A stretch of 32,240 bases of DNA from Bugula neritina (Eukaryota; Animalia; Bryozoa). Below the pieces are notes generated by a model. The model did not search any database, was not told the DNA's origin, and saw only the letters and a list, made by a program, of their open reading frames with translations. The DNA is taken from NCBI GenBank assembly GCA_964035545.1, contig CAXIUT010000250.1:23946-56185 (forward strand), in the 5' to 3' direction. The position numbers and the translations under genes are program-made. The stretch's first letter is position 1. Each line of letters starts with the position of its first letter. Below, piece after piece: positions 1-32,155 of the stretch.

Positions 1-77
1 CCCAACCCCAACCCCAACCCCAACCCCAACCCCAACCCCAACCCCAACCCCAACCCCAACCCCAACCCCAACCCCAA
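1..77 (+). repeat. Left telomere, (CCCCAA)n
   Basis: Perfect CCCCAA tandem repeats from base 1; Tetrahymena-type C4A2 telomeric repeat. Confidence 0.99.
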
Positions 78-295
78 ATAAGTTAACTATCAGTTAAATA
101 GAAGAACCAATGTTTTTATCAATAGAAAATTATAAAAAATTAAATATCATGATGCATGGCTTGAAATAGAATAAGATACTCCTTCAACTTAAAAACCTTG
201 ATTAATTGTCTTTTTAAATTTACTTTTTATTCGATTAAGTTATAAATTATTTCATAGTTATAGATTAAGATGTAAATATTTAGTATAAAAAGGGA

Positions 296-2000
296 TCAAT
301 CATCAGCTTCCCAGTTGAGTACCTCTCCTTATTAATTCTATTGAGCATTTTATATTCTCCGATACTCAGGTTTTACAAATCGATCCCAATCAGTCCAATC
401 AGGATTCTCTACCTTGACATTTCTTTCTTCATAGGCATCTCTTTGTTCAAAGTTAATAAGTTTATTAAGATCAGTCAACATATTAATAAAAATACTACAC
501 TAGTATTTTCTTTTAAGAAAATCTTCAAGTGTGAAATGAATACTTCCATCTTTTTTGAAAAGATCTACCATTTGACAAAGTATATTCTCAAAATTAAAGT
601 CAAGATTGCTCTACATATAAGTTAATCTTTGACTTTGTTATTAATAGAAGTATTCCAATTAATATCCAGTAATGATTCCATTACTATCAAGATCCATTAT
701 TTTAAACCAATATTATAAACTTTGAATAGTTGTTTTGTCTTAAACACTCAAAATAAACCAAACGAAATCTCCGAAACCCATCTTCTATTCAAATTGAAAC
801 TTTTTAACTGCTTGAGAAAATATCCTTTCAAGAGTCTTTCGACTTAATGTATAACCTGAATATTTAGACAGCTATTCTCTTCCCAGTTGAAAGTCATGAT
901 CACTATCTAACTCCCAAAACTTTATATAAATCACATAAAAATCTTCATAACTGAAAAAGTCAGGATTTTTATTAATATCTGCCTAGGCCTAAATATCAAC
1001 TAAACTTTGAAGTATTTTAGAACCTTTAAACTCTCTTAATATCATAAAAAATACCTAAAAGTCATCTTGTAGTCATACTTTCTATTAGCCATATAGAACA
1101 TACGATGAATCACACAAAGAGAATACCAATCTTGAAACTATGGAGTCTACTTTAAAAAATCTAGTCCAGGATGAGATGCCAAAATTTCCTTTAATAATTG
1201 TTTAAAATCTTAGATTGTAGCATATTTCTTTGATGGAATCGAACACAAAAGCCAGAAAGCTCTTTGAAGCAAGTTTTATCTTTAAAGAATTTTCCATGTT
1301 TTGAGAAACTCTGTTTTATTCATTTTCTAAGCAGAAGAATTATTAGTAGATCTGATAATAAGCAATTGAGAGAAATAACTCGGCAATCCAAGTATATTAT
1401 CAAGTAGTTTTTTTGCTATTTCATTATCAATATCATTAGCTCTGATTCCAATAATTGAATTAATCGTTAGAATACTATCTTTTTCTGTCGCCTGATCGAT
1501 AGGTTTCCCTTTTGGGTAGTAAAATTGAGGAATTTAACTTGTTACTCCACGTATCTAAGTATTGATTGATTTAGTTAAAACTGTTGATTTTATCAAAGAA
1601 GGTCCTGTATAAGTTTAGTTCATATTCTTTTTGATATTATCTGAATCAAAAGATGGGTTACCTTTTTCTTCAATCGGACCTCGAGGTGGAGTTATCGTAT
1701 TGCTAAGAATAGCCGATGAGTTAAGATGTAAGTTATTCAATGGGACTTTATGATGTGAAAACAAAGGATTTGGTTCTCTTTTATTAATACAGTCGTACTA
1801 TGTTGCTTTGAGTTTGTTCGATTGTGCTTTTTAGATGAGTTGATCAACAGTTTAGTGATTGGAGCTTAACCATTTGATAAAAAGAGTCTTTATTTTGAGA
1901 GTAATACGTCTAATTTCTTTTTAGCGAGGTAGTATCTGAGAGAACTAACATAACCTGGAGCATTTTTTAGTTATTTATAGTTTTTTAAGAGATCGATCAT
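296..2000 (-). CDS. Protein phosphatase 2A regulatory subunit B'' (PR72/PPP2R3 family, EF-hand)
   Basis: With TAR=Glu and 20-nt introns at 1888-1907 and 1035-1054: [101 protein letters not shown]. Ends in TGA. Confidence 0.95.
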
Positions 2001-2293
2001 GTTTAGTTAATATCGTTCTTTTAAATATTTACTTAATTGATATTTATAACTTCAGAATAAACAAAATCAATCAAATCTAAACTTAATAAAATCAATTCAA
2101 AATTATTCTTTTCAATAAATATTTACTCAAAAACATTATGAATATATTGAAGATCTATTCTTTAAAAATAAAAGAATTTATACCTTGATTCGTCTTCTAC
2201 TCATCTTTTTAAGATTTTTTATCTATTTCTATATTATTTTATATTCATTGTATTGAATGAAGATGACACTCTTTATCAAAGATATTATCAAAA

Positions 2294-4608
2294 ATGATTT
2301 TCAATGATTTTTAGGAAATAGGTTTTAAACTTCAAAAGGATACTCCTGAAGGAAGAGCCAACTCAGAATCATCATATTTAAGTTATTTAACCTTAAAATC
2401 AAAAAATTATCATTTTGAGAACAGTCTTGAACTGAACGTTTATACTGAAGTCGATCTAAAAATTAGTATTTATATTTCATCAAAGAAAGGTATCCAATGT
2501 AGAAAGAAACTTCTACAAGAGTATTTCCGAGTAATGAGTTGCTTGGAAGAGGCTATGATGTATTTGATCAGTATGCCAATGTTCGATCAGCTACTAGCCA
2601 AAACCTTTTTGCTTTTGGTTTTCAAGAACCAACCTATTCATTTCAATTAGAGGCCTAAAACTTTATAGGATATCCAAAGGAGATTGCTGGCTACTCTAAA
2701 TTGAGTCAGACTGAGATCAGAATTTCTCATGGATCAACCGTAGATTAATGTTTATCAGATACAAATATAAATTTTGGAGTGGAAGGAAGATATGCATTTT
2801 TTTCAGCAAGTGCTTCTGTGGGATTTGATTCCCAAGAATCAAGAAAAACAACTAATGACTTTACAACTGTCAGAAATATTATTGATAAATATGCCTTGTT
2901 CATTCAAGACTATTCAACTCTGCCATTGAATCCTAACTTCTAAAAAGATTTGGGCATCCTTGAACCTCGAGCTATTTTTCAAAAATATAAAACTCATTTC
3001 CTTCAAAAATTTATAGTCGGAGGAAGACTTGACTATTCAGCCTCTACTAACACTATTCAAATTGAATCATCAACCAATATATCAGCTTCAGCATAAATGT
3101 CTTTCCAATTTTTAATTGGAGGAGTAGGTGCCAATGTATCTGTTTAGGATCAACAAGAAACTAAAAACTTTTAGGAAAATTCTACTATTAAATTAAATTC
3201 TGTTGGAGGAGATCCTTCCCTTGCTACCAATATTATGATTTCTGGATAAGGTCCATCGTACTATGCTAAATGGTCTTCAAGTGTCAATGCTGATTCTGTT
3301 TTAACAGACTTCTTTTCAGATAGTTTAGTTCCTATCTGGCTATTAGTTAAAAATGAAAGTCAAAGGAATGCTCTGAAAGAATACTTCCCCATTTATGCTT
3401 AAACTTATAACATTAATACTCAAATATAAAAACCAATCAAACTAAAATTTTCTTCAAACTTCTAAGTTGTAGGATCAAATTAAGGTTATCACATTAATCA
3501 TGTTAAATTTTATAAACCGATTGTTGGCAAGGATGAATTTTGGTTAAGTCATTATCCAATAAAATATAATACTTCAATATAAGTCTCTTGGCCTATCCTC
3601 CAGACACTTGACCCATCACTTTTACAAAAACCAACTGGATATCAAATAATTTGGTCTGAAGCTACTTCTAATTTGAAATTCACTATCTGGAGACCTGTAC
3701 CTCCCCCTAACTTTGTATCTCTTGGCATTATCACCAATTTTGGAACTACTCATACAGATATTCCCAATGTCGAAGGACTAGTTTGTTTGCATTAATCAGT
3801 TGTAGCTGAGGGAAATCATAGCACAGTGCATATTTGGAACCATTCTTCTACAAGTACTGGTAGTATGATTAGCCTATGGAACACTGTTCCTCGGGATATA
3901 AAAGGAATCGGAGTTCAATCTCCAGCAATTGCAATTGGATTTTATCCAGCCTTTGATTATTCTCATTTTGTCTTGAACAAATCTAAAGTATATTTAGATT
4001 CCGACTAAACTTTAACTCTAAGAACCACTTTGGATAATATTAAATGCGACTCAGGTATCAAAAGTCAATTTTCATAGGCCTCTATTCATAAACCTAAATT
4101 AGCTGATGGACAATTCTGGTTTGGGCATTCAGTGACACTTCAATAATGGGATACAATCAATTAGCCTTGTTTTTATGTCAATTAAAACTAAAATTAATTA
4201 AATTTATTCAAAAGTCCTATAGGCTATGAAAAAATCTGGAATTATACTAAAGGAAATATACTTTTTTCATCCTGGAGACCTATTGCTCCTGAAGGATACG
4301 TTTCTCTTGGTTATATTTATATGTTAGACATTGATAATGTTAACCCTCCAAGTGGAGATGCAGTTAAAGGGCTCGTTTGTGTCAAGGAGGAATTTTGTGT
4401 TGAAGCTAAAGCCCACTATAATTCTGAATGGGCTTCAGGAGGAAGTGATAAATGTACAACTCATAAGATAATTCCTAAAAATTCTTAAGGATGGGGTCTA
4501 AATCAGAATTATCCAAGAGTTGCTAAAGATTTCCACTAAAATCCAAATCCAAATCCGACACTTCACAAAGTTAATGTATTAAGACTGAACAAGATTCTAT
4601 TGAAATGA
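2294..4608 (+). CDS. MACPF (perforin-like) domain protein with two C-terminal Vps62/DUF946 (beta-tripod-like) repeats
   Basis: LLGRGYDVF; MACPF signature variant YKTHFLQKFIVGG; VGGDP...W...V...LVPIW. Then two repeats containing KPTGYQIIW...WRPVPPPNFVSLG and SPIGYEKIW...WRPIAPEGYVSLG. The start is uncertain: ATG 2294 with a 20-nt intron at 2466-2485, or ATG 2497 with no intron. Confidence 0.88.
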
Positions 4609-5061
4609 TTAAATCCATCAAATATTTGATAAACTATTTATCTAAATCAATTTAATAAAATATAGTATTCTATTTTGTTTAAAATTTATCAAAATATGAA
4701 TAAAATCAACTATAAATCAAAGTTTATTCTTTTATTATTCTATCTTGTTATTTTTATTCAAGTATTGATTTAATATTAACAAGCATTTTAATATTCCTAT
4801 TCATCTTTAAAAAGTAATTTTTAAGTTCTTTTTTTAATATTAAATAGCTTCTTTTATTTTATTGATTCGACATCATATTCTTCTTCAAAATATTATATTT
4901 ATAGATAATCTAAGTTCAAATAGAGTCTTATTATAAAAAATATTCTTAAAAATTATGATATTTCTCAAATATACAAAATAATTAAGTGTATCTATTTTTT
5001 ATTCATTATTAAACCTTATTATTGACTTTAAGATTATTTTGATGAATAATTTTGATAATAA

Positions 5062-5853
5062 TCATAGTTCTTTATAAAGTAGATAATTTTTAATCTTTTT
5101 CAATATTTGTTTTGACTTCTCAGAATCATTCTTTATATTCTAAATCTCATTTTGATATTCTCTAATCTTACCAACTAAAGCTTCCTTTTGATTCTGTAAC
5201 TTACTAGTTTATTTGCTCAATTATTCATTTCTAACATCTAATTGCTAAATCTTCTCTCGAAAGTTACTATTTATTTTTTTTAACTCACTCTTATAAACCT
5301 GATTTGTATCCTCTAACTCATTTTGATTAATAGATAAATGCTCTAAATGTAATCTTAATCTTTTTATCTGACTATTCTCATTTTTTAACTGTTTATTGAG
5401 CTATTTATATTCTTCTTATTTGTATTTATACTTATTATAAACTTACATCAACTGTTTCTTACATTCAACTCTAGCTTTCTTAAGTTACTTCTCATCTTAG
5501 AACTTTTACAAATCAAATTCATTCAAATGAAATTTATTTTATATTTTACCCTCAATAACTTATCGAACCAGCAAAGGATAAGGAGTAATAACTCTTGAAA
5601 GAAGCTTCCAACCAATAGGTCCAAATATAGTTTTTCTAATTCCACTACAAATTGATGATAAATTTACTATCTCACTATAAGTAAGATAAGGACAGACCCT
5701 TATTATAAGTATAACTTTAGGTAATTTGATAAGAAATGAATGAGTATTACTCTTTTTAGCATGGATAGGATTGATCAGTTTATTATGTGTCTATGACAGC
5801 TAACTAACTAAAGACTAAAGACTTTTCTGTAGCTATTAAAGATTGCAAAGCAT
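5062..5853 (-). CDS. F-box domain protein with C-terminal coiled coil
   Basis: 264-codon ORF (TAR=Glu). LIKLPKVILIIRVCPYLTYSEIVNLSSICSGIRKTIFGPIGW resembles an F-box; a K/E-rich heptad region follows. Confidence 0.7.
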
Positions 5854-5893
5854 AATATGATTATTAAATAAATGATAAAAAAGATTATTGATA

Positions 5894-6991
5894 TCATTTT
5901 CTTGTAGGTCCAATAATACTAATAGTAGTATTTTATTGATATTGATCAAGTAGAGGTAAAATAACAGGATCTTTTTAGTTTTATTAATCTGAATCAAAAT
6001 TCATTGAAACACATAAATCTTCTTTATTATTTGCTTTTTTAGTAAATTAACTAAATTTAAGTAAAGTTTGTTCTTGAGTTATTTATTCCTCAAAAGTAAA
6101 TGAATTCTAAAAATGTTTTTCAAGCTCTTTTTAAGGTATTCTAGATATTTTCTATTTATCAAGTGATTTCTATAATATCTAAGAAGGAGATAAATTTATA
6201 TTCTACCTTTGTTTCTTTATCGAAAAAGGAATAAGTAAATTATTACATGATTCTGATGCTAAATATTCATGATAAGGTTTCTTTTCTTGATGATTTACCT
6301 TTCTTTTTAACTTTATACTTGTATTGAAATTTATCACGTGATTTTACCTCTTATTTTAAACTTAGTTGATTCTTATCATTATTTAACAAGATTATTTTAT
6401 AAAATACTCTGAAATATCTCTTAGTTTATACGACTTATCTTTTATTTATTCATACAAACTATCTAAATTTATTCCTCTAAATTTTTATTTATGATCAAGT
6501 AATATTCTGATAATATTTTTTCCAAATTATTATTAATTAACTAGATCTCTTTGATACTCATTTTTGGCATAATTTTCATTCATCCAGACAAAAGATTCAT
6601 AGTTAGAATCAAAAGCTATCATTTTTGCTGATATCTTAAAAGGTCCAAACTTTTAATACAAAATACTAAATCCCCAAATGATCTTTGATATTATTTTAAG
6701 ATTATTTACTGCACTTACTTCTTTTATTTACTAAAGATGGATTAACATTTTGGTTGGTTTAAGAACAAATATAACTTCTTGTTAGTTAAAAGGCTATATT
6801 CTGATCCATCTATTGGTGATAAGATGAGATTTATGTTAGATTCTCCAGTTGTAGAGTTAAAGCTGTTCAAGAAGACAATGAGTAGGAATGTGTAGATGTT
6901 AAAAAGTTAATAAATTTTACTTTTTATTGATAAAACGAAAGGATGCGCCTAGTTTTATACTTTCTACATGCTTATTCTATGGATTTTACAT
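5894..6991 (-). CDS. Hypothetical protein, possibly with a degenerate kinase-like N-terminal part
   Basis: 366-codon ATG-to-TGA ORF under TAR=Glu (IIWGFSILYEKFGPFKISAKMIAFD..FVWMNENY). No catalytic motif recognised; start codon uncertain. Confidence 0.6.
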
Positions 6992-7236
6992 GCTATATGA
7001 ACTTTTATCTAAAAGGTTTATTATTATTTGATTATTTTATTTTGAAAACCTAGTTTGAGAATTAAAAGCTTTTTATTTTATAATCTAAGTCTAAAAACAT
7101 AAACTAGATGATATTTATCATTATTATCATCTGTAAATTTACTATATTAAGATAGTTTGGTTTAAGTAAATAGATTGAAATGAATTCAAAATTAAATTAA
7201 ATAGTAATTATTCTGATTGAAGTAAATATTTTACAA

Positions 7237-7809
7237 TCAAGACCTAACTCCTTCAAATATACTTTGTTATATTTCAGAACAAATAGATTGAGCTTCTTCA
7301 AAATCAATATTCTAATGCAAAGGAAGACTGAAGTCTAGCCCATCAAAAATGTCGAACTAACACTTCATTATTTACTCTTTTGTTATTTTGTATTTAGTCC
7401 AAAATATCAATTCTTCCAGTTGAGGTCTTCTGGTATTGAAAAACTTGGAACTTATATTAAATACAGTCACTGCCACCTTTAAAGCTATCTATTAATAACC
7501 TTCAAACACAAGACTGTCCAACATCTATAACATTAGACAATATGAATAAATGTCATAGCTGCAAATTTAGGTCAAATTTTGAATAGTTATCAGTGCCAAG
7601 TATTTTGATGATTTCTAAGTGTGATAAACTGAACTAATTAGTAAACCTTAATATGTTTTAGCGGTTTAAATCTTTTCTTCAAGGCAATTGCTTGTTTAAA
7701 GAGTAGTTTTGTGTTAATTTGAGTGAATAAAATAGTTTTCCTGATGAAATAGATTCTATACTTGAGGTTTGAAGTGTTATTACTCCATTTATGTCTTTGG
7801 ACAATTCAT
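7237..7809 (-). CDS. Divergent cyclin-like protein (N-terminal cyclin box only)
   Basis: 191-codon ORF. VAVTVFNISSKF...LEELIFWTKYKITKEEIMKCEFDIFDGLDFSLP matches cyclin-box helices 3-5, and the conserved Glu is encoded by TAG. Confidence 0.65.
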
Positions 7810-8134
7810 AAGTTATTTGATAGTAGTCAAATTATGATTTATATATGAATTAGTTCTACTAGTAAAATATAAAAGATTTTATTTATAAAATACAATATTA
7901 TAATTATCAATTCTAAACTAAATATCGTCTCTAGCATTCATTTATCAACTTTTTTCAATAATTAATCTTACTTAATATTGTTGAAACTTAGTTCTATTTT
8001 AATAAATCAGTTAAAAGAATGATATTTAATGTCATCTTTGATAAAATAATAAATATTTATTAATTTTAATAGAAGGAGTCTTAAAAAGAGCAAGAGCTTA
8101 AATTATATAATTATATTAGATATTATAAATAAAA

Positions 8135-9544
8135 ATGGAAGCTCAAGATATGAACCTGGTAACACCAAAATAGCCACAACCAGAATAAAAAAAAGCTATC
8201 CTCAAAATAGGAGACAAGTAAATAGAACTCCCAATCCTGAAAGGCACCCAAGGCCCTGATCTCATCGACATTCGAACTCTCCTCAGTAAAGCCAATATGT
8301 TCGCATATGATCCAGGATTCATGTGCACTGCCAGCTGTATCTCCAATATCTGCTATATCAATGGATAAAAAGGATAGCTACTCTATCGAGGTTACCCAAT
8401 TGAACAACTTGCTGAGCATTCAACCTATATGGAAACTTGCTATCTCATGCTCTATGGAACTATGCCTTCTCTTAGCGAGCTTACCAAGTTCTAAGAAATC
8501 GTAGTTGGGTAGATGATGATCAATTAAAAAATGATAGAATTTTACAAAGGATTCAAAAGTACTTCACATCCCATGGCTATTATGGTAGGAGTCGTTGGAG
8601 CTCTGTCGGCTTTTCTACACTCAGATAATCTTTTTAATCCGAGAGATAGATATGAAGTGGCTATCAAGTTGATAGCAAAAATGCCCACACTTGCCGCCTA
8701 TGCCTATCGAGCAGCCAAAGGATTACCTTTTGTCTATCCTAAAAAAAGCTATGGATATATGAAAAACTTTCTCTATATGATGTTTTCTAATCCCATGGAC
8801 GATAATTTCTAAATGGAAGAAGATATCATCAGAGCACTTTAAGTAATTTGGATATGTCATGCATAGCATGAACAAAATGCTTCTACATCTACAGTCAGAA
8901 TAGCTGGAAGTTCTCATGCCAATCCTTATGCTTGTATCGCTGCTGGTATAGGATCTCTTTGGGGACCTTATCATGGAGGAGCTAATGAAGCTGTCCTAAA
9001 TATGCTTGAATAGATTCTTTCTAAAGGGACTACGATTGAATAAATTTTGGCAAAAGCGAAAGATAAATCTTCTAACTTCCGTTTGATGGGTTTTGGACAC
9101 AGAATATATAAAAACTTTGATCCTCGAGCAACAATTATGCAAAAGATGTGCTATGCAGTACTTAAGTTAGTTGATGATAACGAGACAATGCCTTTGTTAT
9201 AACTGGCTATTAATTTAGAGAAGCAAGCCTTAAAAGATGAATACTTTATAAAGAGAAAACTTTATCCAAATGTAGATTTTTACACAGGCATAGTTTACAA
9301 AGCAATTGGTATTCCTAAAGACATGTTTACAGTATTATTTGCAGTATCAAGAAGTGTAGGTTGGATGGCCCATTGGTGTTAGATGATGAACTAGAATCCA
9401 AATAGAATAAGTCGGCCAAGACAACTGTATGTGGGTCCAATAAACAAGTAATACTAGTAGATGAAGAAGAGAAAGAGTAACGATGATTCTCGAGTGAAGG
9501 AAATGCCTAAATTATGTAAATTAACTCAATTAATGAAATTATGA
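8135..9544 (+). CDS. gltA: Citrate synthase, bacterial GltA (type II)-like, probably peroxisomal
   Basis: 470-codon intronless ORF: [87 protein letters not shown]-terminus -MKL. Confidence 0.96.
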
Positions 9545-9575
9545 TCCTCAATCAATTACATTCGATAATGTTAAT

Positions 9576-10178
9576 ATGAATAAAATAAAAGCTAAAATCA
9601 ATGATGACCAATTTTCACCATGGTAAGAATCATTCAATGACATGTCCAAAACTATGTAACTATCTCGTCATATCAATAAACCAATAAAATTAAAAAAAAC
9701 TTTATAACCTCTCGCTCATAGTCCTCGTCTGCATTAGTCCAACAAAAAAAATATGACCAGAACCTTCATCAACATCAGTAAAATCAATCTACACAACAAC
9801 AATCCTCATCAATCATAATAACTAAATCATCAAGAATCTAGAAGATATTCTGGTCCTAGGATCACTTTCTACTCTAAAATGAATCCCAAAATAAATGGAC
9901 GTTCTAAATCATTTTTAGATCCTGAAGAATAATACTCGAATAATCATAATTTTATAAAAAAGAATATAGCCAGCTAGCTAGCACCAAGAAGCGAATCAAT
10001 AAAATATTTATAAATAATTGACTAGAAAGATCAAATAAAAAAGAAATAATTAAGCTCTCCCAGATATAAATCAATAAACTTACATAAAATAAACCACCCT
10101 AAAGCAAAAAAAGGATAATAAAATCAATGTCTATACCTTCGTAGACTAAAACAATTGTATAATCACTATAAAATATGA
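9576..10178 (+). CDS. Hypothetical basic low-complexity protein
   Basis: 201-codon ATG-to-TGA ORF under TAR=Glu that fills the gap between neighbours; no motif recognised. Confidence 0.6.
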
Positions 10179-10228
10179 TCATTTCATCTATTTTTCTATT
10201 TCTATACATTATATAAAATCATTATTAG

Positions 10229-11032
10229 TCACCAAGGCTCAATATAATTATCATCATGGTGTTGATGCAAAGCACTATTCTTGCTAACTCTTCTACTCTG
10301 ACTAGTATAACTTATATGATTCGGCCTCTTTATCATCTCTCGACGTCTCTATCTATTTATCAACATCTTTGAAGACAATGGCTAGTCATCTTTCTACATA
10401 AACTAAATATTTGTTATTGGAAGTTAAGGATTTCTCAAAAATGGTTGCTGTATATTACTTTTAAATGAACTATTCAACCAAAATGATTTTATCACCTCTT
10501 TCTTCTCACTCTAGATCTATGAATTGAACTACTTCAACAAATCTTGATATCGTCCCTAAGTTATAAATATATTTACTACTTTTTATGATGGCTAGTAATG
10601 TGAAAAATGTAAAAAGTCTGTATTTCTACTTAAACTAAGTCGTTCCTGTGCTTTCATAAATGAATTTATATCATTTCTTTTACCTATCTTAGATCTATAT
10701 GTTTTAGCTGCCTGAGTTCTTGATTATCTACGACTCAATTCACTTTGAGGTTGAGACCTAGAAGATCTAGAATGGGATCTAATTGCATTTTAATTTCTAG
10801 ATGTCTCAATTATATTTTATTTAGTTTGATTTTTTATTTAATTTTTAACCAACTTAGCCGTATGATCCAGAAGGTACTTTCTTTGATTGGTATAAGAGTT
10901 ATGTTTTTGATGACATTTTATTTCTGGAATGCTTAAATTTTTCAAAGTATTTTCTATTCTAGTGGGATAAGGAGATTGAGGGGAACAAGAACGATTGAGT
11001 TAGTGTTTTAACCTTTGTTTTTGCAAAAACAT
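10229..11032 (-). CDS. Hypothetical Ser/Arg-rich protein
   Basis: 268-codon ORF (RSHSRSSRSQPQSELSRRESR). Possible in-frame 21-nt intron at about 10556-10576. Confidence 0.6.
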
Positions 11033-11132
11033 TCGACCAATAAAACAAAGAAACTAATATAAAATTATCTAATATGTTCAATATGGATAAATATCACAAA
11101 ATAACATTCAATAAATTTAACTAGACAATAAA

Positions 11133-12719
11133 TCATTTCTTTTCTTTATCTAAATATTCTATCACCTTCAACACTATTGCCTCTTAGTATGATATCTTAT
11201 CTTTTAATGCATAAATAGCACGTACTGCATCTTCGTAACTGGTCTGAGGCCTTAATATTAAAACATATCTAGCTGCTCTATCGATTAATTTGTAATTAGT
11301 TGGCTTAACAAAAGTCATTATATTGGAATAGTAGCGATTCATCAATCCCATAGCTACTGTTGATAGGTTATTCAGGATAACTTTCAATATAGAATGATGA
11401 GATAATCTACATTTTGATGGATAAACTGGAAAATCTACTCTAAGCATCTCTTTGTTTGCTTTTGATGCAGTTATCACAAGGGGATGTTCGATAGTTATTT
11501 TATTAGCTCTTTATTCATGCAATCCAAATCCAAGTATACTTTAAGAAGAAACTTTATTTTTATACTTAGTCCAATAAACACTATCCAATCCTCGAATTTA
11601 TCGATGTCCAAGCATCTCCTTCCAATCTTTATCAACTCTTTCTTCCCACTTCATGTTAGCGTTTATAGGTGATTTATGGATGATATTAAGATTACACCAG
11701 CTTTCAGGTTAATTTGGTTCATATTTATTTTTAAAAGGATTTAAACTAAAAGTTGGAGACCTTTCTGTTGTATCTGTTATTATCGTAATCGCATAATACT
11801 CATCAGTACAATAAGAAAGTATTTATCCATTTTTGTAAAGCCCTGTCTAAAATTAAATCAATTTAGTAATAGGATTAAAATCTGTTGTAGCTATGTACTT
11901 TCCCATAGCATTCACGTTGTCTTAAGCATAATGCTTCCAGCTAACTTATTATTTTCTTATAGATCTAAGACGATCGCATCCAAGAAGAGCTATTCCAATA
12001 GCATGCATAAGAATGGTAGTTGATTGCATTCTAGTTGATCCTGCTAGTGCCATATATCCTACATTACAATTTATTTTGCATATTTTATCACTTTGAATAA
12101 ACTATCTTGATCTCTCCACATTTTTTATCAATATTTCATCTGTATTACCATAGAGTATATAAGGCTTTCGTTTAGTTAGTTATGTTGATTTCCAAATGGC
12201 ACCAATCACCCAAGAAGTCTAACCTCCTTCAGTACTACCAATCAAGATATCATTCTATTTGAATCCAAGTTAGACTAGCTGTTGAGAAGCAAATTAAGGA
12301 TGATCCTAGAAATCTTAAATTGATTTGATGAGGGCTGCATCTCCTCCAGCCATGAATGATATAACTCTATTTTCCCATTCTTTATATAGCTAGATTGTTT
12401 ATTGTCTCCAAAGTGTTTCTAAGACCATTGATAGTCTTCCAGTAGCTCCACAGCCACAGATGAATATTCTACCTCCTGTTTATAAAGCATCATTAAGTTC
12501 TTTGTAGAGATGCTATAATTAAGGTATTTTAGCTTTGAGGATATCAACTAGTTAAATATCAAGAGTTTTGATGATGGACACTGCTTTAGGAAGATCATTT
12601 TTAGCAAAATCTGAAAGACCAATAGTTTTAGGGTTTTGCTGTTCAGTTAGTAAACATCCTAGTTTAAATTTATGTGCTATTTGAAGAAAATCGTCAGCAG
12701 TTTAAGTTTAACTTGCCAT
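11133..12719 (-). CDS. MurQ (N-acetylmuramic acid 6-phosphate etherase)/glucokinase-regulatory-protein-like tandem SIS-domain protein
   Basis: 529-codon intronless ORF: LLTEQQNP, GGRIFICGCGATGRLS, FMAGGDAALIKSIEDFED, GSTEGGETSWVIGA, LAGSTRMQS, TDTTERSPTFS, LKVILNNLSTVAMGLMNRYYSNIMTFVKPTNYKLIDRA. Confidence 0.88.
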
Positions 12720-12767
12720 ATCTTGACTATATTTAATCCAAATAATAAAAATAACATAATTTTATTA

Positions 12768-13752: not shown

Positions 13753-13777
13753 TTATTAAATTTTATGTCTATCATTA

Positions 13778-15091: not shown

Positions 15092-15118
15092 TGATAAATA
15101 TATATAATACTATGCATA

Positions 15119-15853: not shown

Positions 15854-15904
15854 TATAATAATATTTAATACTTATCAATAAGTACAAAAGATAATAAGAT
15901 GATA

Positions 15905-18366: not shown

Positions 18367-18539
18367 GTGTTGATTGTTATTAATAAATCAATTAAAATCA
18401 CCTTTAACCATATCATACTGTCATTTTAATTTAAACAATAAAATCAATGCAGTCAGAATATAAAGATTAAATAATTTAGGATAATTATTGAGAAATTAAG
18501 ATTATAGTATTTAGTTTATCAAGGAAATTAGAATAATAA

Positions 18540-19925: not shown

Positions 19926-20064
19926 TCTCTTTTTATACTATCTAAATATAAATCAATATCAATTCATAATTTGATAATTAAGATGCAGGTCACATAATAT
20001 TGATTGAATGTGTAGTAGTAAGATATTACACAAAATCAAATCAAATTATAATTTTATAACTTAC

Positions 20065-20464: not shown

Positions 20465-20558
20465 TGTTCATCTTGCTATTGTTTTATTAATAGTTTATTC
20501 ATAAGTGAAAGTATGGTTAAATGAACAGATGATTTATATATACTAAGATCCGAAAATA

Positions 20559-23057
20559 TCAAGCAGTAATAAAGCTCGAAGAATTACCCTCTGCATCCAA
20601 TTTATCAACTTTGATAGCTACTTTTTTATTTTACATCGACTGCTTCAACTGCTATAACAACTCCTTCTTGATCTCACGATTCCCTCTCATATCAATCGTT
20701 ATATCGTCTGTCTTCTAACAACACTCCCGGACCACCTTTATTATATTTCCCATCGTCTCAGATGTCAAATCGCAACTTTATAAATTCAAGTCAACTGTTG
20801 ATAAACTACGCATTTTCAAAAGACAACTTGCCAAGTAATTAGCTGCATAGTCACCTATGTTGGTTCCTTAGAGGTTTAGTTTCAACTTTTTTACCTTTTT
20901 AGTCCGAATCAAACCAGCACAAATACACTGAACTCCATCAAAATTAACTTAATTGTATCTCACACTCAAATCTAACTCCTATAATTTTGGCTACTGAGAT
21001 ATCAGTCGACCAAGGTAGTGACTTCCTTTTTCAGTAAAGCCACAAGTATCAAAAACCAATCTTAATTTACATATAGATTTAAGGTTTAGAATCGAATTAC
21101 AAAGATATTTGAAGGCAAAATCTGAAAGTTTATTATTGGATATATTAAGATCTAGTGATTCTATTTTATTAAGTTATTCAAGAAAAGGTGACCCATTCTT
21201 TAAAGCTTTCTATGAAAATTAGTTATTCATCAAGTTCATTTTAAGTTCTTGTAGTGACTATAGCTTAGAAATGGTCTTAAGGAACTAGGTAAAACCTTTA
21301 TCTGATATTTAAGAACTAAATAAATTTATAATTACTTTCTGAAATATAACTTAAGAGAAGATAAAGTCTTCATACTGACACAAAGATCACCTACAGCATA
21401 GATTCCTTATTCTCTCATTGAATTGTTTGAAATATTCAGAGTAAAATCTTTTACTTTTTGAAGACAATAAAGCTATTTTGAAGCTTTTCCAAAATGAAAA
21501 GGATTTATCTTTGTATTTTCAAGATTTATTGATAAACAATTGATATTTTGAGCTGTAGCTATATTTTTAAACATAATTATCAAAAATTACGGTTTTATTT
21601 AGTTGTATCCTAAGTTAAGATCTAAATTTTTAAGTTATGAAAGGTTGGAAAAGTCAAAAAAATCATCAAAAGAGTTATCAATTCTGATATGATTACTAGA
21701 AATATTAAGTTCTAATAGTCTTAGTTCTGTAAGGTGGTTTTTAATGGTTTTAAGTAAAGATTTAAAGCCAGCTCCTGTAATATGATTACTAAATAAATAA
21801 TAATTTACTTCCAAAGATTAAGACTCAAAGTTTTCATATTCTTATTCTTTTATAAAGCCTCAGATATCAAAAACAAGTGCTTATCTGTTACTTTTCCCAT
21901 CTCAATGCTAAGTTTTAATTCTTGAAGTCTCATATATTTTATGTTAATCAAATCTTCAAGGATATCTCTTTCAGGTTGTTTACTATTACCAATATTAGTT
22001 TGAATAGAAATATTGAGTTTTTAAAAATTATTTTATGTGCTTACCAAGTTTTGCATCTGATTCAAATTTTATATCTTATCAATTACTATCAAACTACTTG
22101 ATTATAAGTTGTTAAGAAGTTTAGGATCCAACTATAAAGTCTTATTTATTTTCTATATCATTAATAATATACGTTTCTTAGCAAGTTATTTTATGAGATA
22201 AACTTTGATAACTCAATGAAATCCAAACGATTTGAGACCTACTGTTCTAACATCTTTCTCAAAACCTTTCCCAAACCTATCACGTTAGGATACATATCTT
22301 TGATTATTTGAATTCTGTCCTAGATCTTTTATGCCTATTTATTCAGTCTATCATCTATCTTTTTCAATGAACAAAACTCCAAAAACAATAATCCCAAAGA
22401 ATAAGTATCACTTTTGTAAGCTTTATAGTTGACAAGATGTCTTTTTTATCTATAGGCTTTGAAAAGTTCAGGAGAAAGGTAATAAGGAGTACCGATTACT
22501 GTCATTTCCTTCGTGTAGTCACAAAAATCAACAGCAGCTCCTGCACCCACGTCACAAACCTTAAAATACAATGGATCTTATGAAAATAGCAAGATATTGG
22601 AAGGTTTAATATCTCTATGTGCGACCTATGACTGCTGCAAGTGAGTGAAGACCTCAATCATACTGGTAATGAACATGATGATATCTTATTGTTCGAAGGG
22701 TTCTTTTCTGGAAGAAAGGTATGTTTTCAGGTTGGCAATACCTTTCTCCATTTGAATATATCCTTTCTTATAGGAGTTAATATTTCCTCTTGTCTCCTGA
22801 AGACAATAACATCCTCGGAATTATACGATATTCGGGTGAGGATTCACTTTGATCTTTGCCAATAGTTCTATCTCCTTGCGGAATATAAATTCAGCCTGCT
22901 TGTCATCTAACCGGATCTATTTGACGCACTCAATATTGTTCTCCTCGTCGAGAACCTAGTAGACGATACTATTGCCTGTACCGATTACTTGTCGGATTTT
23001 GAAACGATCATACAGCTACCGTTATCCGCTAATGAACTTGATGCTTTTATTGCTCAT
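20559..23057 (-). CDS. Ser/Thr protein kinase with C-terminal RI-like leucine-rich repeats
   Basis: 813 codons after 20-nt introns at 22153-22172, 21789-21808 and 21316-21335. HPNIV, AHRDIKPSNILL, KVCDVG, GTPYYLSPE, KSDTYSLG; then repeats such as LSLNLWNNHI, LDLNISNNKL and LNLEGTNIGD. Confidence 0.92.
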
Positions 23058-23393
23058 CTTTAAATGTATAATCAAATATCAAACAACTGAGACTACCTTC
23101 TCATCTTCATCTCTTTCTTCCTCCACTCTTTATTGATCTACTATTTTTCATTCCACCTACAATCGCTCCTTCTCTTTGATTTTATCTTCCGTTTTTCCAT
23201 AACTACTATCCCAATATAGGATGAGATTGAACTTGAGGCTCAAGCGTTTTATTTCTCAAAGAGATCATGAGACAAAAGGATCATACTAAAACGAAAAGAG
23301 GTTCAGTTTCTTAAATAAAAGCATTTGAGTTCAGGTTGCATTTCTTTTGAGTTAGTTGATAAATAAAGATCAATAATCGTTATAAAACGTAAA

Positions 23394-24136: not shown

Positions 24137-24281
24137 TATGATTTTTATATAGATTTTTAATAATTACGATGATTGATAAATGAAATATATGAGATTAACT
24201 TAATATTTTAGATCAACAAATAATTAAAAAGAGCTCAATTAATTATAAATAATAACAAAATATATAAAACACAGTATAAAA

Positions 24282-24909
24282 ATGTGGAAAGCATCAAACA
24301 AAAAGAAATATTAAACAAAAAACACTTTTATCATGAAAGGATCAGCAAGATGTTACTACACCTCAAAGGTAACAGTCTAATTTGATCAACTAAATTAAAA
24401 TGGTAAATATATCCATCCAAGTATGAGATAACTACAACGTCAACAACTAATTTTACCAACTTTTAATCATGACAAAATATATTTCACTCCAACTTTTAAA
24501 CTTCCATCCTAAACAACAGATATAGAACGGTACATGGAAAAACATTCTAACAAGTTGATCCAATATTAGCCCATCGAATAATCATAAATAGTAAATAATA
24601 TCTTATCTAGATGGAACCAAGACCCAAATAGAAACGATATTGCCATGTCTGTGAAGATAAATTCTAAGATTATTTAGATGTATTTTTGATCTTATCAAGC
24701 ATATCAACTCAGAAAAACACTACGAAGTTGTCCACAAAGACAAATATCACAAAAAGATAGTAAAGCTATGCAAGAAGATCTGGAAGAGAAAAGAGAAAAA
24801 CAAAATACCAGTTGAAGACCGATAATAAGTATAGGAAAGTATAGAACAAGTATAAAGTAAATAAAACAACCAATATACATAAAATCAAATGGTATCTCAT
24901 ACTAACTGA
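24282..24909 (+). CDS. Dbf4-type zinc finger (zf-DBF) protein
   Basis: 196 codons after 20-nt introns at 24591-24610 and 24680-24699. Splicing yields KRYCHVCEDKFEDYLDHINSEKH, the C-x2-C...H...H spacing of Dbf4 motif C. Confidence 0.8.
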
Positions 24910-24989
24910 TCATGAGTTACCTTTCTTATTTCTATCAACTTATCACAGTTCAAAATGCATAAATTATATTAAATAACTCAATCAACGTT

Positions 24990-25378
24990 ATGATCCCTCC
25001 CTACGCACACACCTTCACAGTCATCCTCGCTGTCTTCGGACTAGTGGGCTGTATCGGTCGGTTCGACTACAACTTGGTCCTCGCTCTCGGCTGGATCTAC
25101 CTCGGAGACATCAACTATCGTCTCACCAATTCCATTGGGGTATCTCTCTATTAATGCAGTTCTACGTAATGGTATTCGGATCGGTAGTCGTCGATGCTAT
25201 AAGTATGATATTATCAGCTGGTCAGGGAGATCACTTTACTTTTATATTTTTACCTTTATGTGAAATAATAGTAAAATTTGCAATTTGTGCATTTTCAGCT
25301 TTCCATTTCTACAACAAGATGAATAAAAAAAACATTCCATAACCACTAGAACAATAATCCCAATTATAGAAAAAATGA
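24990..25378 (+). CDS. Small multi-pass membrane protein (weak AGTRAP-like resemblance)
   Basis: 123 codons after a 20-nt intron at 25140-25159; 3-4 hydrophobic segments and many C-ending codons. Confidence 0.75.
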
Positions 25379-25432
25379 TAATTATATTCTTATATTTAAT
25401 AATTAATAAGCTAAATGAATATCATTTATTCA

Positions 25433-27303
25433 TCATTTATCCATTAGATCAGCCAATTCTTCAGGGGCATACATCGCTTTGTTATTACTTTGCTAATCAA
25501 TTAAAAAGCAGGCCAAAAGAGTATCAACTGCTACATCGAATATCGACATAAAAACAACTGCTATCGCCAGTGATATTATTCCAACCAATATCAATAGATA
25601 AATAGGCTAGAGAACGTTTTATTTAATACTTGATACGAATGTTATCAAGATGTAGAAGAGGAAAGTTGTCAAACCAGCTATTAGTAATTTACCTACAAAA
25701 GCAAGAATAAAACCAACTGCTGCTACTATACTATACCTAAGAGCATTCGATAAAATCAATGCTATTGCATCACCAGCAGCTGTACAAAAATTTTTACCTG
25801 TTATTGCAATTTGAATAAAAGCATTTTTATTTAAAAATTAAACTACTCGCTTTATACACTCCAAACAACAACGAACACAATTTATAAGAGCTGAATAACA
25901 ACAATTTGCCTCTCCTGGTGGCTCCATCTGACTATTGAATATCTAGAATATTATCTGAATGAATTGAATGATAGCCAAAAGAAGAGCTCCAAATGCTAAA
26001 CTTCCTAAATGGTAACGGAATACCATATAGTATGCTGTACATATAGGAGAATCTAACTCTACTCCTGGAGCCTTAGAAAAGTACCAAACAGCACATGCCG
26101 CAGCAACCACAAAAGTAGTTATGGCCAATAGCAAAGCATTAGTCCACAGAGAACCGAAAAGGAAATAATAGAAGTATCCGAGACTAGCACTTGTAAAACT
26201 TTCAATAGATGTGAATACATCATCTCCTTCAACCACAAAATTTGCAGTACCAATCAATGTTACCATTGCAAAGAGTGCAAATACCCAAAATGCAAATACT
26301 ACTAGACCCATAATGACAGGAACTAGTACAACTTGACAAGTAGAAGCAATGAACTGTCCAGCAACTCCGCAAAGAGCCACAGCAAGTCGAATCCGACTGC
26401 AACAACAAAGAATAATTATGATAATAATTGCCATTACCCCAAATGTGACATATCCAAATATATTATAATAGCTGTTAGTAGGCAAATCTGGAATATCAAT
26501 GCCTAAATTCCCAACAAAACTATCCTGACTGATAGCTCCTCCATTGTAAAGGAAAATGATACCTAGTCCAGCCAGGAGAAGAACCAAGAGGAGGAGAGAA
26601 ACCCAAATGAAGCAAGCAGCAAAGCATCGAAGGAAGAACATGAAAAGGACAGAAATAATAACAGCAGCTACTAATGCCAGTAAAATCCATTTCCAATTCT
26701 AAATAAAAATATATTTACTTATTAGACATCAGTAACAAAGTTAGCAACTCCAGCCTGTCTCAATCTATCAGAAAAGGTACTAGTATAATCCTTAAAGGCG
26801 TTTTCAAAGACAACTGAAGTAGGAATACAGACTCTCCCAATAAGGCCCTTTGTCTCATAACCTATCAAATCACTAGTTGTTAGAGTATCATTAGGATTTC
26901 CGTTGGAGTCAATTGTTTTGGTATAGTCACATGAAGCCTTATCATTTCCTGCACTAAAACAGTCAAGAACTGTTAAAGTGTTACCATTAAACTCTGGGCA
27001 TGCTTTTACGCATGTTCTATGTTGCAAATTGCTGGTCGTTGGATTGTAAAAATAAGCATACTAGAAGTCCTTGGTCACTGAGTTAGAACCTCCACAAACG
27101 TTTCCTTTCTAGTCAGTTGCACGATACACGTTGGTTGTATCTCCATTGGTGTATCCATAGATAGCGAATCCAATCAGGACTCCCAAGTTGATCAAGAAAA
27201 GGATACAGCAAAATACATCTGTACAATCTCTTTGATAGGGGTGTCTAGGTCCATTCTTCACATCTGCGAATCTTTCAGCCACAGCCTGTTAGTCCTCTGC
27301 CAT
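25433..27303 (-). CDS. Choline transporter-like protein (CTL/SLC44 family)
   Basis: 617 codons after a 20-nt intron at 26699-26718. RDCTDVFCCILF, CVKACP, RIRLAVAL, RYHLGSLAFGALL, FLNKNAFIQIAITGKNFCTAA, AVDTLLACFLIDE. Confidence 0.95.
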
Positions 27304-27441
27304 TTAAATTATATCAAAAACTTAAATATTAAGAGTTTAAAAAGTTTAGCGACCGTTTAGACCTTAATAACCAGTAAATAAATAGATATTCAATATATTA
27401 TTTCCAATATTCAACAATGAAGTTAACTATCTCCATATTTA

Positions 27442-28848
27442 TCATTTTTACTTCGATAGTATTATTACTTTGCGATTATTCTTTCCCTTGCGTTATTCTG
27501 GATTCTTCAATTGAATTAACATCTGAGATGCCTCAACATGCTTATCCTATAACTATAAAACCTTTTATAAAGATTCAATTGCCTCCTGCTTTCTACTTAA
27601 TTGAAGCAAACATTTTGCTTTGCTTACATAAAACTGACAACATCTTGGACTAAATACTACAGCTTAGTTAAACTCACCTAAAGCTAAGTCATAGTTCTTA
27701 GAGTTGAATAAAGCTACTCCTCGAACACTATAGATAGAAGCTATCCTGAAATTTAGCTCATCATTTTTTTTTTCAACTTCATGAGCTCTAAGATAGTCTT
27801 CTAAAGCCTTAACAAAATCATTCAAAGACCGATAACAATCTCCTCTATTGGTTAGCATTCCCCAATCTTTAGGATTAAATGTTAATCCTTCAGTAAATAG
27901 TTTACAAGCCTCGTTGAATTTCATTTGCTTATATAAGAAGATTCCCATTTAGTTGTAAGTTAAAGAAATTTGACTTCGAAGTTCTCCTTAAAGAGATAGA
28001 TCTTCAATATGCTTATTTGCTAACTCAAGATCAGATAAAGCTTGTTCATATTGCTCTTTAGTTCTGTAAAGATAAGCACTCAATATAAGTAGTTGAGTAT
28101 GATAAGGATGAATCTATAGACCTTTTTTGACCTTTAGCTTACATTTCTATATTTTTCTGTCAATAAGATCATATTTAGCTTCTTTGTACAGCTTTTAGAT
28201 TTAAGGAGATATCATTTAGAGGAAGAGTTGAATTTAAGAATTACTTTTATCAAGACTATAGGCATTCCAAAATTATTTATATCCTTTGGCTGTTTAAAGC
28301 AGACTCCAATAAATCATGGCTCTTAAAATTATAAGATCTGCATCTTTCTAATCAATCATAATGCAGTTTTATACTTCACTTAAAGCTAACTATCTTTGAT
28401 TTACTTCAAGATAAGCTAAAGCACTTTAGAGATAGTCACTAAAAATTGATTTTTAACTTATTTTTTTCATCAATCTTTTGTGAAATTGAGGATATCTTCT
28501 TGAAAAAGATTAAAATTCTGTATCTTCTAGAATGTTTTTAACTGATCCTATCTATAGTAGTTGCAGTCCTTGTATTTTTGATATGTTTTTGACTTTTTCA
28601 AAAGCAGCAGAAGAGTTATTTAATTGATGCATTCTTCGATAAAATAGACTTGCACTCGTTAAATCCAATATTTTTTAATATATTTATGCTAATTCGAATA
28701 GATACTGAGGATCTTCTTTGAGAAAAATAGCTTTATGATAAGCTTCAATAGCCTACCAGTAACTATCTTATCTCCTAAGACTTCTGGCTAATTCTATTTT
28801 ATCTGCTAAACTTTCATTGATAATTTTATCTTTGGATGTTTGTTTCAT
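27442..28848 (-). CDS. Tetratricopeptide repeat protein, TTC16-like
   Basis: 469-codon ORF with multiple TPRs; QISLTYNEMG...LTNRGDCYRSLNDFVKALEDY resembles TTC16. Confidence 0.85.
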
Positions 28849-28912
28849 TTATCAGATTAGAATAATTATAAAGTTCAATAAAAATAAATACTAAGATAAG
28901 TTAAATAAATCA

Positions 28913-29953
28913 TCAAAATTTGGCTTTATTGTCATATGTTCCAAATACTTTATCCCAAAAGTTAGTCGTAACACCGAAATTAGTTTGAGAATTTCGATAG
29001 TGATGGGTTAAATGATTAATTCTTAATTATTTTAACCATTTTATTTAAATTTAACGCCCAAAATGACAATAATGATGCATACTATCATATGCTATCATTC
29101 CTCCTAGAAAACCTACAAAGATCATCAGAGCTTTCAATTGAGGAAGAAATATTAATAGAACAATAATTAAAAGAGCAAAAGTAACATTATCTCTTAGAAG
29201 AGAAAAAGCAACTCTATTTTTAAGTTTAGGAAAACAATGATGAATCAAATGAGGATTAAGAACTCCGTCTTGAAAAACACCCAAAGGATGAAACATAAAT
29301 CTATGGTAACAATATTCTGAAAAAGTCCAAACAAAAATACCTATTACAGAAAGATATAAGTCATAAACAATTTACTCAATAGAGTTATTGGAAAAGATCC
29401 AATAAATGATTAACAACAATTCAAGAAGGAAACCAAAGAAACTTGTCCAAAAATTAGTTTAATAGTAATAGTTTTACTTTTTATTTCGTAGAGAGGTTAT
29501 CTTTTATGGATATTTTAATATTTTAGGAATCTAATTTAGAAGTTATAGCTATTATGCTTTGAGTTTGGATATTTATTCTAGCAAAGGTTGCTAAAAATCA
29601 AATTTTTATATTATCTATTGATGTTTTTTTATTTTTTAATTGTTAAAAACTGAGCTATAAAACTTTTGTCCTTCCCCACTTTTTGAAGAATTATCTAGTT
29701 TACCAATAACTTTTCGACAAACTATAAGATCTGCATTAAGAGAGTGGTTTTTAGCAAGATAAACACTAGATAAATCTTTGTTGATAAAAGGGGTCAAAAT
29801 ATTATTGTATCCAGGATGATCGAAATCAGAAATATCAATTATCAAATTTTTCCATAGCACTAACTTCTTATCTTTTTGATTGATTTAAAATTATTATTGA
29901 GACATCTACTTAATCTAACTGAAAGGTTGAAGTGCAAAGTTTATTTGTTTCAT
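28913..29953 (-). CDS. Fatty acid 2-hydroxylase (Scs7/FA2H-like; cytochrome b5 plus FA hydroxylase domain), paralog C
   Basis: 347 codons; b5-like DISDFDHPGY...HS; His boxes WTFSEYCYHRFMFH, HLIHH, YDSMHHYCH, HLTHHY; FGVTTNFWDKVFGT. Confidence 0.9.
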
Positions 29954-29998
29954 CGATTATAAAAATTTATTATAAAATGATCAATATGTTTATGAAAA

Positions 29999-31042
29999 TC
30001 ACTGTTTTTTATCTTTATTGCCATAAGTTCCAAATACTTTATCCCAAATGCTACTAGTTACTCCAAAATAGGCATCTTGATTTCTATAATGATGTTTTAA
30101 GTGATGAATTTTTAAATATTTAAGCCACTTTATTTCTGTTTGAGGTCCAAAATGACAAAAGTAATGAATCAAATCATAAAATATCATTGCAGCAGTAAAA
30201 CCAACTATCATTATCGATGCCTTAAGAACAGGAAACAGAATCAACAAACCCAAATATATCAATAATAGCGTAAAAGAATCATGTATCAAAGGAAGAGCCA
30301 ATCTATTTTTTAGATTAGTAAAAGAATGATGAACCAGATGATTATGAAGTGTCCCTTCAGGTATTTTATTACCAGAAGGATGAACTATAAATCTATGACC
30401 TCCATATTAAGTTAATGTCCAACCTATTATTCCAAAAATAACTAAATAAAGATTCGATAGGATCTATTGAATCGGATAATTATAGAATAAAAAGAATGCT
30501 ACCAAAAGTAATTAAAGGAAAAATCCAGGAACAGTAATCCATAGATGAGTTTAGTATAAGAAATTAGCAATTGTTCCTTTTACTGATTGTATTTTTGATG
30601 GGACTTTAAAGCATTTAGGAAATTCAGTTAATATTTGAAGTTCATCTGAGTTAAGTTTTGCAATAGATTCCATAATAGGCTGTTGAAAGTCAATTTTTTA
30701 TACTATTTATTGATGTTTTTTAACTTTTTAGTTATTATAAACAGAGTTATAAAAATACTATCCTTCACTCTTATCTGAAGAGTTTTTAAGACGACCAATA
30801 GTTCTATTGCAAACAATGAGATTAGCATTAAGAGAGTGATCTTTTTAAAAATAAGCTGATGAAAGATCTTTGTTGATGAAAGGAGTCAAAAGATTATTAT
30901 ATCCAGGATGATCAAAATCAGAAATATCAACTATTAAGTTTTTCCATAAAACTAACTTCTTATTAGTCTGAGCTGATATTTGTTCTTTTGATATTTATGA
31001 AATTTCAGTATAAGGTTTGAGTCTATAATTCAGAGGATCCAT
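29999..31042 (-). CDS. Fatty acid 2-hydroxylase (Scs7/FA2H-like), paralog B
   Basis: 348 codons; DISDFDHPGY, WTLTEYGGHRFIVH, HLVHH, YDLIHYFCH, HHLKHHY, FGVTSSIWDKVFGT. Confidence 0.9.
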
Positions 31043-31079
31043 ATAATAAAATTATAGTAAATGAATAAAAGAATAAAGA

Positions 31080-32117
31080 TCAACTTTTTAATTTTTAATA
31101 AGTTCCGAATATTTTGTCCCATAAATTGGTCGTTACTCCAAAATTGGAATTAGGATTTCTGTAGTGATGTTTGAGATGATTAATTTTTAATTTTTTAAGC
31201 CAAGAAATTTATATTTAAGGACCAAAATGACAATAATAGTGAATACTGTCATAACTGATCAAAGCTGCCATAAGACCAATAATAATCATACACACAGATA
31301 ACTATGAAATAAAATACCTCAAAATAGTCATAATTACAACTATTCTAACAGACATTTTAAAAAAAGAAAGAGCAACTTTGTTTTTAAGATTAGGGAAGGC
31401 ATGATGAACCAGATGAGGACTATAAGTACCATTTTATTTAATTCCTTATTCATGAAGTTGAATTCGATGAACGTAGTACTCTGCTAAAGTCCAAAGAAGC
31501 CAACCTATCATCACTAGATGAATATTAGATAAAATATCAATAAGAGAGTTATTGCTAATTGTCCAAGTAATTAAAAGGGTTAATTCAGTTATAAATACAG
31601 AAAAACTAATCCAGAAATGTTCTTCTGCTAAGAAATTAGATATTTTACCTTTAACGAATGTGATCTATTCAGGATTTTTGAATAATTTAGGAATATCTGA
31701 TAATAGTCTAAATTCTTATGGTTTTAACTTATTGACTGATTACAATAAAGGTTGACTGAAATCACATTTTTGTAGAATATCTTAATGCTTCTTTATTTAT
31801 TAACTACCTACAACACTATTATAAAAACACTATCCTTACCTTCCTTATTATGAATTTGACAATTTTCCAATAGTCCTTGAACAAATAATCAAATCTCCAT
31901 TACTAGAATGATTTCTGTTTCTATAGGCTTAAGAAATATCACTACCAAGTTGCGACTTGATGATACTATTATATCCAGGATGTTGAAAATCAGAAACATC
32001 GATGATTAAATTTTTATAAAGAACTATTTCTTTAGTTGTTTTGATTGATTCTAGTTACTATTGGCTGATTTCTTGAAGTTAAGAGTATGGAGGTAATATT
32101 GGATTTAAAGGATTCAT
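31080..32117 (-). CDS. Fatty acid 2-hydroxylase (Scs7/FA2H-like), paralog A
   Basis: 346 codons; DVSDFQHPGY, WTLAEYYVHRIQLH, HLVHHAFP, YDSIHYYCH, HLKHHY, FGVTTNLWDKIFGT. Confidence 0.9.
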
Positions 32118-32155
32118 TGGTAATAATTATAACTTTTTTGAACAAATAAAAATAA

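Follow-up and report, generated by a model that had tools for sequence, protein, structure and literature searches.

The 32,240-base window analysed here, part of the Bugula neritina assembly GCA_964035545.1, is one complete telomere-to-telomere macronuclear chromosome of a ciliate (30% GC) in which genes end, with few exceptions, in the stop codon TGA directly followed by T. The long open reading frames (ORFs) of the window carry many in-frame TAA and TAG codons and are interrupted by TGA alone. Pfam matches of pieces free of TAA and TAG (together, UAR in the message) identify a citrate synthase, a choline-transporter-like protein, a TPR protein, and a fatty-acid hydroxylase. Intron-aware gene calls give 18 of 20 distinct stops as TGA-T (binomial p = 1e-5 against a background of 42%), the two exceptions being TGA-C at 10229 on the minus strand and TGA-A at 15653 on the plus strand. 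An earlier note on this DNA had counted TGA-T at 23 of 24 genes; the strong excess of T stands, but the proportion is 18 of 20 in the window and ≈80–87% more broadly, not 96%. The gene ends that it listed at 296, 11133, 15905, 25433, 28913, 29999, and 31080 (minus strand) and at 4608 and 9544 (plus strand) are indeed TGA-T, and the two tandem TGA-TGA stops, at 25433 and 28913, are real; no convincing gene ending at 20464 was found.

Gene models were built from sequence alone. We took TGA-bounded ORFs, scored them by codon log-odds with the longest ORFs as the training set, and selected non-overlapping models greedily, with a rescue step that joined ORFs over introns of the form GTA...AG and a length of 18–24 nucleotides (nt). 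Introns of 25–34 nt accepted in a first rescue pass appeared spurious, and the range was narrowed to 18–24 nt; three ORFs that spanned telomere junctions were artefacts and were removed by splitting contigs at telomeres. The dominant intron size is 20 nt, with the form GTA...(T/A)AG. Several of these tiny introns hold a TGA that is in frame with the preceding exon; messages left unspliced would thus terminate early.

The excess of T after the stop codon (position +4) is also found in a wider sample of 18 telomere-bounded pieces from the same ciliate, 170 kb in all. Across the 104 stops in this sample, the +4 base is T in 83, A in 14, C in 4, and G in 3 (p = 4e-15 versus 42%), which corresponds to 80% T overall and to 87% (67 of 77) once a single contig, C15, is removed. 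The frequency of T is 0.80 at +4 versus 0.35–0.51 at each position from +5 to +21. A comparison with out-of-frame TGAs, which the earlier note had proposed as a check, gives the same answer on the 170 kb: T follows only 35–38% of out-of-frame TGAs within genes and 42% of all TGAs, as against 80% of stops. The excess of T is therefore genuine, depends on the reading frame, and is limited to the single base at +4.

These figures bear on two explanations that would place the cause outside termination. In the first, the bias would be produced by the ORF-based calling of genes or by too small a sample, a suspicion that could draw on gene models that lack RNA support and on the fact that some ORF ends fall in introns. 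We regard this as extremely improbable: picking the first in-frame TGA cannot bias the base that follows it, the same pipeline returns background values on other ciliate contigs, homology-anchored stops agree with the remainder, and the p value lies below 1e-14. The second is a non-translational cause, in which T belongs to a motif for 3′-end processing or to the 3′ untranslated region (UTR), or arises from mutational or dinucleotide bias acting locally beside very short 3′UTRs. In three convergent gene pairs of the window (13750-13780, 10176-10231, and 25376-25435), the stop codons are just 25–54 nt apart, indicating that the 3′UTRs are extremely short or overlap, and signals could pack against the stop codon in such tiny 3′UTRs. 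A cause of this kind is nevertheless very unlikely, given that only one position deviates while +5 to +21 remain at background, that TGAs in the other frames and on the antisense strand are followed by T in 35–42% of cases, and that the T is fixed to the reading frame and conserved while its neighbors vary.

UGA-U is a preference of ≈80–87%, not a requirement. The stop signal had initially been described as near-obligate, a description that does not fit the 21 of 104 credible genes that end in TGA followed by A, C, or G (TGA-V), mostly TGA-A. The coding score per codon of these genes, 0.091, matches that of TGA-T genes, 0.087, and the TGA-V genes therefore look real. An eRF1 that recognizes UGAU only, with UGA followed by A, C, or G left leaky, read as sense, or recoded, would account for the very strong bias in the window, and a scan of the 170 kb for in-frame TGAs flanked by coding potential did return four weak candidates, all of them TGA-V. 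However, 20-nt introns explain two of the four, which fall inside or next to such introns; the remaining two are weak. Conserved domains point in the same direction. Among ≈110 kinase-domain and ≈55 Ras-domain matches from the ciliate, each with typically 5–18 in-frame TAA or TAG codons, we found 14 in-frame TGAs in total versus an estimated >1,000 TAA/TAG codons, making TGA ≈1% as common. Matches with such a TGA include C264:86185-86943, C15:77227-77907, C86:77892-78701, and C27:44610-45089. A rate this low could be due to tiny introns that the search read through.

Nor do the regions beyond the stops suggest leakiness. Within six codons past the stop, back-up TGAs number 14 in frame versus 15 per out-of-frame frame, so that tandem stops are not enriched in the 104 genes. 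No ciliate tRNA-Sec(UCA) was found among the 53 of 6,392 candidates that were scored; apart from the tRNA-Sec gene of the host, the lone match, which lies on a small contig, is a tRNA-Ser(UGA). Both the scarcity of TGA within domains and the lack of enrichment of back-up stops run counter to the proposal that TGA-V is leaky or recoded. UGA-A, UGA-G, and UGA-C end apparently normal genes with no sign of recoding, and we consider recognition of UGAU alone very unlikely.

UGA is the sole stop codon: long ORFs are bounded by TGA only, and homology-anchored C-termini end at TGA. The reading of UAR as glutamate, already put forward in the earlier note, is supported by the ciliate eRF1 gene (C314:17039-18373, minus strand), in which seven of nine alignable UAR codons stand opposite Glu in the host eRF1 exons of the same assembly, as well as by seven aligned citrate synthases, in which Glu dominates opposite both UAA and UAG positions. 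One of the UAR codons of eRF1 is the invariant E55, the number being that of human eRF1, onto which the host exon was mapped; it and several more conserved glutamates of the ciliate eRF1 are encoded by TAA or TAG. The code is thus the glutamate code known from peritrichs (NCBI table 30), with UAA and UAG as Glu and UGA as the only stop. A tRNA gene with a CUA anticodon, labeled "Pyl" by ARAGORN, lies at C10:16787-16858 (equivalent to L008:6787-6858) and is a putative reader of UAG.

Relative to the host protein, the ciliate eRF1 has RASQIKD in place of TASNIKS, G-S in place of GTS with the loss of one residue, and YNCDSRF in place of YLCDNKF; the YxCxxxF motif is kept, and the NIKS loop is altered to xIKD. 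Comparable loops occur in the UGA-only eRF1 proteins of Tetrahymena (KATNIKD) and Paramecium (SIKD) (PMC3632111). Judged by these motifs, the protein is a release factor of the UGA-only ciliate type. Inspection of the eRF1 motifs, another of the checks suggested, was informative in part: RASQIKD and YNCDSRF mark a UGA-only factor, but the motifs say nothing about +4. The statement that eRF1 itself reads the +4 base is too simple, because in solved termination complexes this base stacks on G626 of the 18S rRNA (PMC5829715).

To compare the stop across species, we searched public assemblies with a UAR-free piece of the citrate synthase gene and retrieved the matching contigs. Seven full-length citrate synthases (that of the window and those on L151, L154, L157, L160, L161, and L163) share 70–84% identity and all use UAR as Glu. 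All seven end at the same ...LMKL residue, followed by TGA-T in six and by TGA-G in one, and in this one gene the bases from +5 onward vary among the orthologues while the +4 T is kept. The seven also have in common a C-terminal tail, ...PKLCK(L/I/W)T.LM(K/E)L (9485-9544 in the window), which may be a targeting signal. A metagenomic homologue of the fatty-acid hydroxylase, L150 (58% identical), ends in TGA-TGA.

The bias is not shared evenly among ciliates with this code. On the contigs of the closest relatives (L151, L157, and L160, with citrate synthases of 82–84% identity), T occupies +4 in 23 of 29 stops from intron-aware calls and in 15 of 18 when only ORFs of at least 300 codons are counted. 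On more distant Glu-code contigs the corresponding numbers are 21 of 52 and 15 of 38, a significant difference (Fisher p = 0.001) where the local background is 35% T. As a further comparison, unrelated low-GC metagenomic contigs with C4A2 telomeres, collected by a telomere-pattern scan of metagenomes, gave 42–46% T by a crude method that, applied identically to this ciliate, gave 68–86%. The +4 T bias looks restricted to a sub-clade of Glu-code ciliates.

The window forms the last 32 kb of contig C259 in a 216-Mb assembly. The large contigs of this assembly hold standard-code, intron-split genes from another organism, and many small contigs consist of telomere-capped ciliate pieces chained together; the ciliate part comprises contigs from about C10 to C321. 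Six of the small contigs (C10, C11, C14, C15, C259, and C314) have one C4A2 tract at the start and then several G4T2 tracts, with unrelated sequence resuming directly past each G4T2 tract and N gaps at two of the junctions; the window is the final member of the chain in C259. Public sequencing runs under three different organism labels carry parts of window positions 8001-14000 at ≈99% identity, suggesting that this ciliate, or close strains of it, travels with several hosts or samples. No RNA run matching the window was found; the four public runs aligned to it yield DNA-like contigs with ≈1% strain variants and no splice joints. One variant is a 4-base deletion at 9547, right behind the TGA-T-C of the citrate synthase. 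A search for relatives with a piece of the choline-transporter gene found none. The positions of the telomeres, introns, and stops are collected in Table 1; the ORF that ends in the TGA-T at 31080 shares sequence with the 29999-31258 ORF, which lies in a different frame, so that this TGA-T may be internal rather than a true gene end.

Table 1. Telomeres, introns, and stop codons with their +4 base in the window
Feature	Position	Strand	Remarks
Left telomere, (CCCCAA)n	1-77	+	
Stop TGA-T	295-298	-	Gene 296-2070, one 20-nt intron
Intron, 20 nt	1035-1054	-	Contains in-frame TGA
Stop TGA-T	4606-4609	+	720-codon ORF 2449-4608, weak Vps62-like Pfam match
Stop TGA-T	5061-5064	-	Gene 5062-7117, 19-nt intron
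Intron, 19 nt	5901-5919	-	
Stop TGA-T	7236-7239	-	ORF 7237-7944, low coding score
Stop TGA-T	9542-9545	+	Citrate synthase 8042-9544, C-terminus homology-anchored
Stop TGA-T	10176-10179	+	ORF 9537-10178
Stop TGA-C (exception)	10228-10231	-	ORF 10229-11077, modest coding score
Stop TGA-T	11132-11135	-	571-codon ORF 11133-12845
Stop TGA-T	13750-13753	+	ORF 13153-13752; 25 nt to convergent stop at 13778
Stop TGA-T	13777-13780	-	ORF 13778-15118
Stop TGA-T	15118-15121	-	ORF 15119-15874; ATG of next gene ≈60 nt downstream
Rival ORF to 15119-15874	15237-15653	+	Ends TGA-A at 15653
Stop TGA-T	15904-15907	-	Gene 15905-17250, 20-nt intron
Intron, 20 nt	16170-16189	-	
Stop TGA-T	19923-19926	+	ORF 18492-19925
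Stop TGA-T	20558-20561	-	ORF 20559-21386
Stop TGA-T	21579-21582	-	Gene 21580-23078, 20-nt intron
Intron, 20 nt	22153-22172	-	
Intron, 20 nt	24591-24610	+	
Stop TGA-T	25376-25379	+	Gene 24177-25378, 20-nt intron
Tandem stop TGA-TGA	25430-25435	-	Choline-transporter-like gene 25433-26728
Stop TGA-T	27441-27444	-	TPR protein gene 27442-28851
Tandem stop TGA-TGA	28910-28915	-	ORF 28913-29980
Stop TGA-T	29998-30001	-	Fatty-acid hydroxylase gene; Pfam domain stops 8 residues short of stop
TGA-T	31079-31082	-	ORF 31080-32240; may be internal ORF end
Right telomere, (GGGGTT)n	32157-32228	+	

An influence of the fourth base on termination has long been known. The signal in this ciliate resembles the tetranucleotide stop signals of other eukaryotes in that the effect is specific to +4 and C is rare (4%), but differs from them in that U is preferred at the expense of purines (A 13%, G 3%). 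Elsewhere among eukaryotes, purines are preferred at +4, TGAT is under-represented, and UGA-C is leaky; UGA-U acts as a strong context in mammalian reporters (PMC5829715). The overwhelming use of U runs contrary to both the purine preference and the under-representation of TGAT (PMC5829715), as the earlier note had remarked with respect to purines. Other UGA-only ciliates, namely Tetrahymena, Paramecium, and Oligohymenophorea sp. PL0344, likewise have UAR reassigned, UGA as the only stop, and the NIKS loop of eRF1 changed to xIKD; their reported +4 pattern, however, is an avoidance of C only, accompanied by an excess of tandem UGA (PMC10553269), as compared with the strong U preference and the lack of a tandem-stop excess in the 104 genes here. 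The codes of Condylostoma, Parduczia, and karyorelicts share with this one a termination that depends on more than the triplet, as well as very short 3′UTRs (PMC4967479), but there the stop codon often serves as a sense codon too, whereas the conserved domains of this ciliate contain hardly any in-frame TGA.

The nearest parallel is bacterial. In bacteria a U at +4 extends the stop signal, and in both E. coli and yeast this base reduces read-through (Wei & Xia, PMC5289835), and the UAAU/UGAU extended signal is attributed to Poole, Brown & Tate 1995 as cited in PMC10553269. As in this ciliate, the U stands directly past the stop codon, and it is taken to reduce read-through where release factor and near-cognate tRNAs compete. 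The bacterial enrichment is moderate, is clearest in highly expressed genes that end in UAA, and involves RF1 and RF2; here the preferred base follows UGA in 80–87% of all genes, and the organism is a eukaryote, whose release factor is eRF1. Our literature search found no report of a UGA-U preference in ciliates with the peritrich (Glu) code. The preference for UGA-U in this ciliate is real, strong, position-specific, and conserved.

What maintains this signal is probably selection on the fidelity of termination, such that UGA-U would serve as a strongly preferred extended stop signal in a Glu-code ciliate that has UGA as its sole stop. Selection would act on how eRF1 competes with near-cognate tRNAs for UGA, the weakest of the three stop codons, and in this lineage U would be the base with the least read-through. 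The underlying change may sit in the termination machinery, that is, in the N-domain of eRF1 or in the decoding center, rather than in suppressor tRNAs, because distant Glu-code ciliates must also carry UAR-reading tRNAs yet show no bias. In a more specific form of this idea, the sub-clade composed of this species and its nearest relatives switched its +4 preference from purine to U by way of eRF1 (for example through RASQIKD or the shortened GTS loop) or of a change in the decoding center, and effectively reads a fourth base; we put this forward only tentatively, as possible though doubtful.

Alternatively, U could be chosen for fidelity but sensed on the tRNA side, with a 3′ purine stabilizing near-cognate tRNAs and eRF1 itself indifferent to the base. 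The abundant tRNA-Glu that reads UAR is one position away from a UGA reader, and U would minimize its read-through. The presence of a CUA-anticodon tRNA on a ciliate contig is in keeping with this explanation, as is the finding that, in bacteria, +4U is used more often the more abundant near-cognate tRNAs are (PMC5289835). Distant Glu-code ciliates, however, need the same UAR tRNAs and have background T at +4, and Tetrahymena, Paramecium, and PL0344 are reported to avoid C only (PMC10553269), so that sensing by tRNAs appears rather unlikely.

Several observations weigh against an extended stop signal kept by selection on fidelity. On contig C15 (1-40000), TGA-T accounts for 16 of 27 stops, whereas the remaining ciliate contigs together have 67 of 77 (p = 0.004), although codon usage is similar; C15 may belong to a second ciliate or hold a different gene class. 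With the coding score as a proxy for expression, TGA-T and TGA-V genes are equal, leaving the expected pattern of a stronger bias in highly expressed genes unsupported. In the solved termination complexes, +4 stacks on G626 and purines are favored (PMC5829715). The contrast between close and distant relatives comprises 29 versus 52 stops, and intron settings tuned to this genome could deflate T in the distant species. The gene models, with their splice sites and 3′ ends, derive from sequence alone.

UGA is the leakiest stop codon. A lineage left with only this stop uses U after it in 80–87% of genes, in contrast to the purines favored elsewhere among eukaryotes and to the simple avoidance of C in other UGA-only ciliates. 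On a practical level, when genes are predicted on such ciliate contigs, whether from metagenomes or from host assemblies, TGA-T can serve as a cue that separates true stops from the TGAs that lie in 20-nt introns. Together with its apparent restriction to a sub-clade, the U bias offers a natural contrast for studying how the fourth base is sensed in eukaryotic termination, and if the sub-clade did switch its +4 preference from purine to U, that switch would amount to a natural experiment on the sensing of the +4 base.

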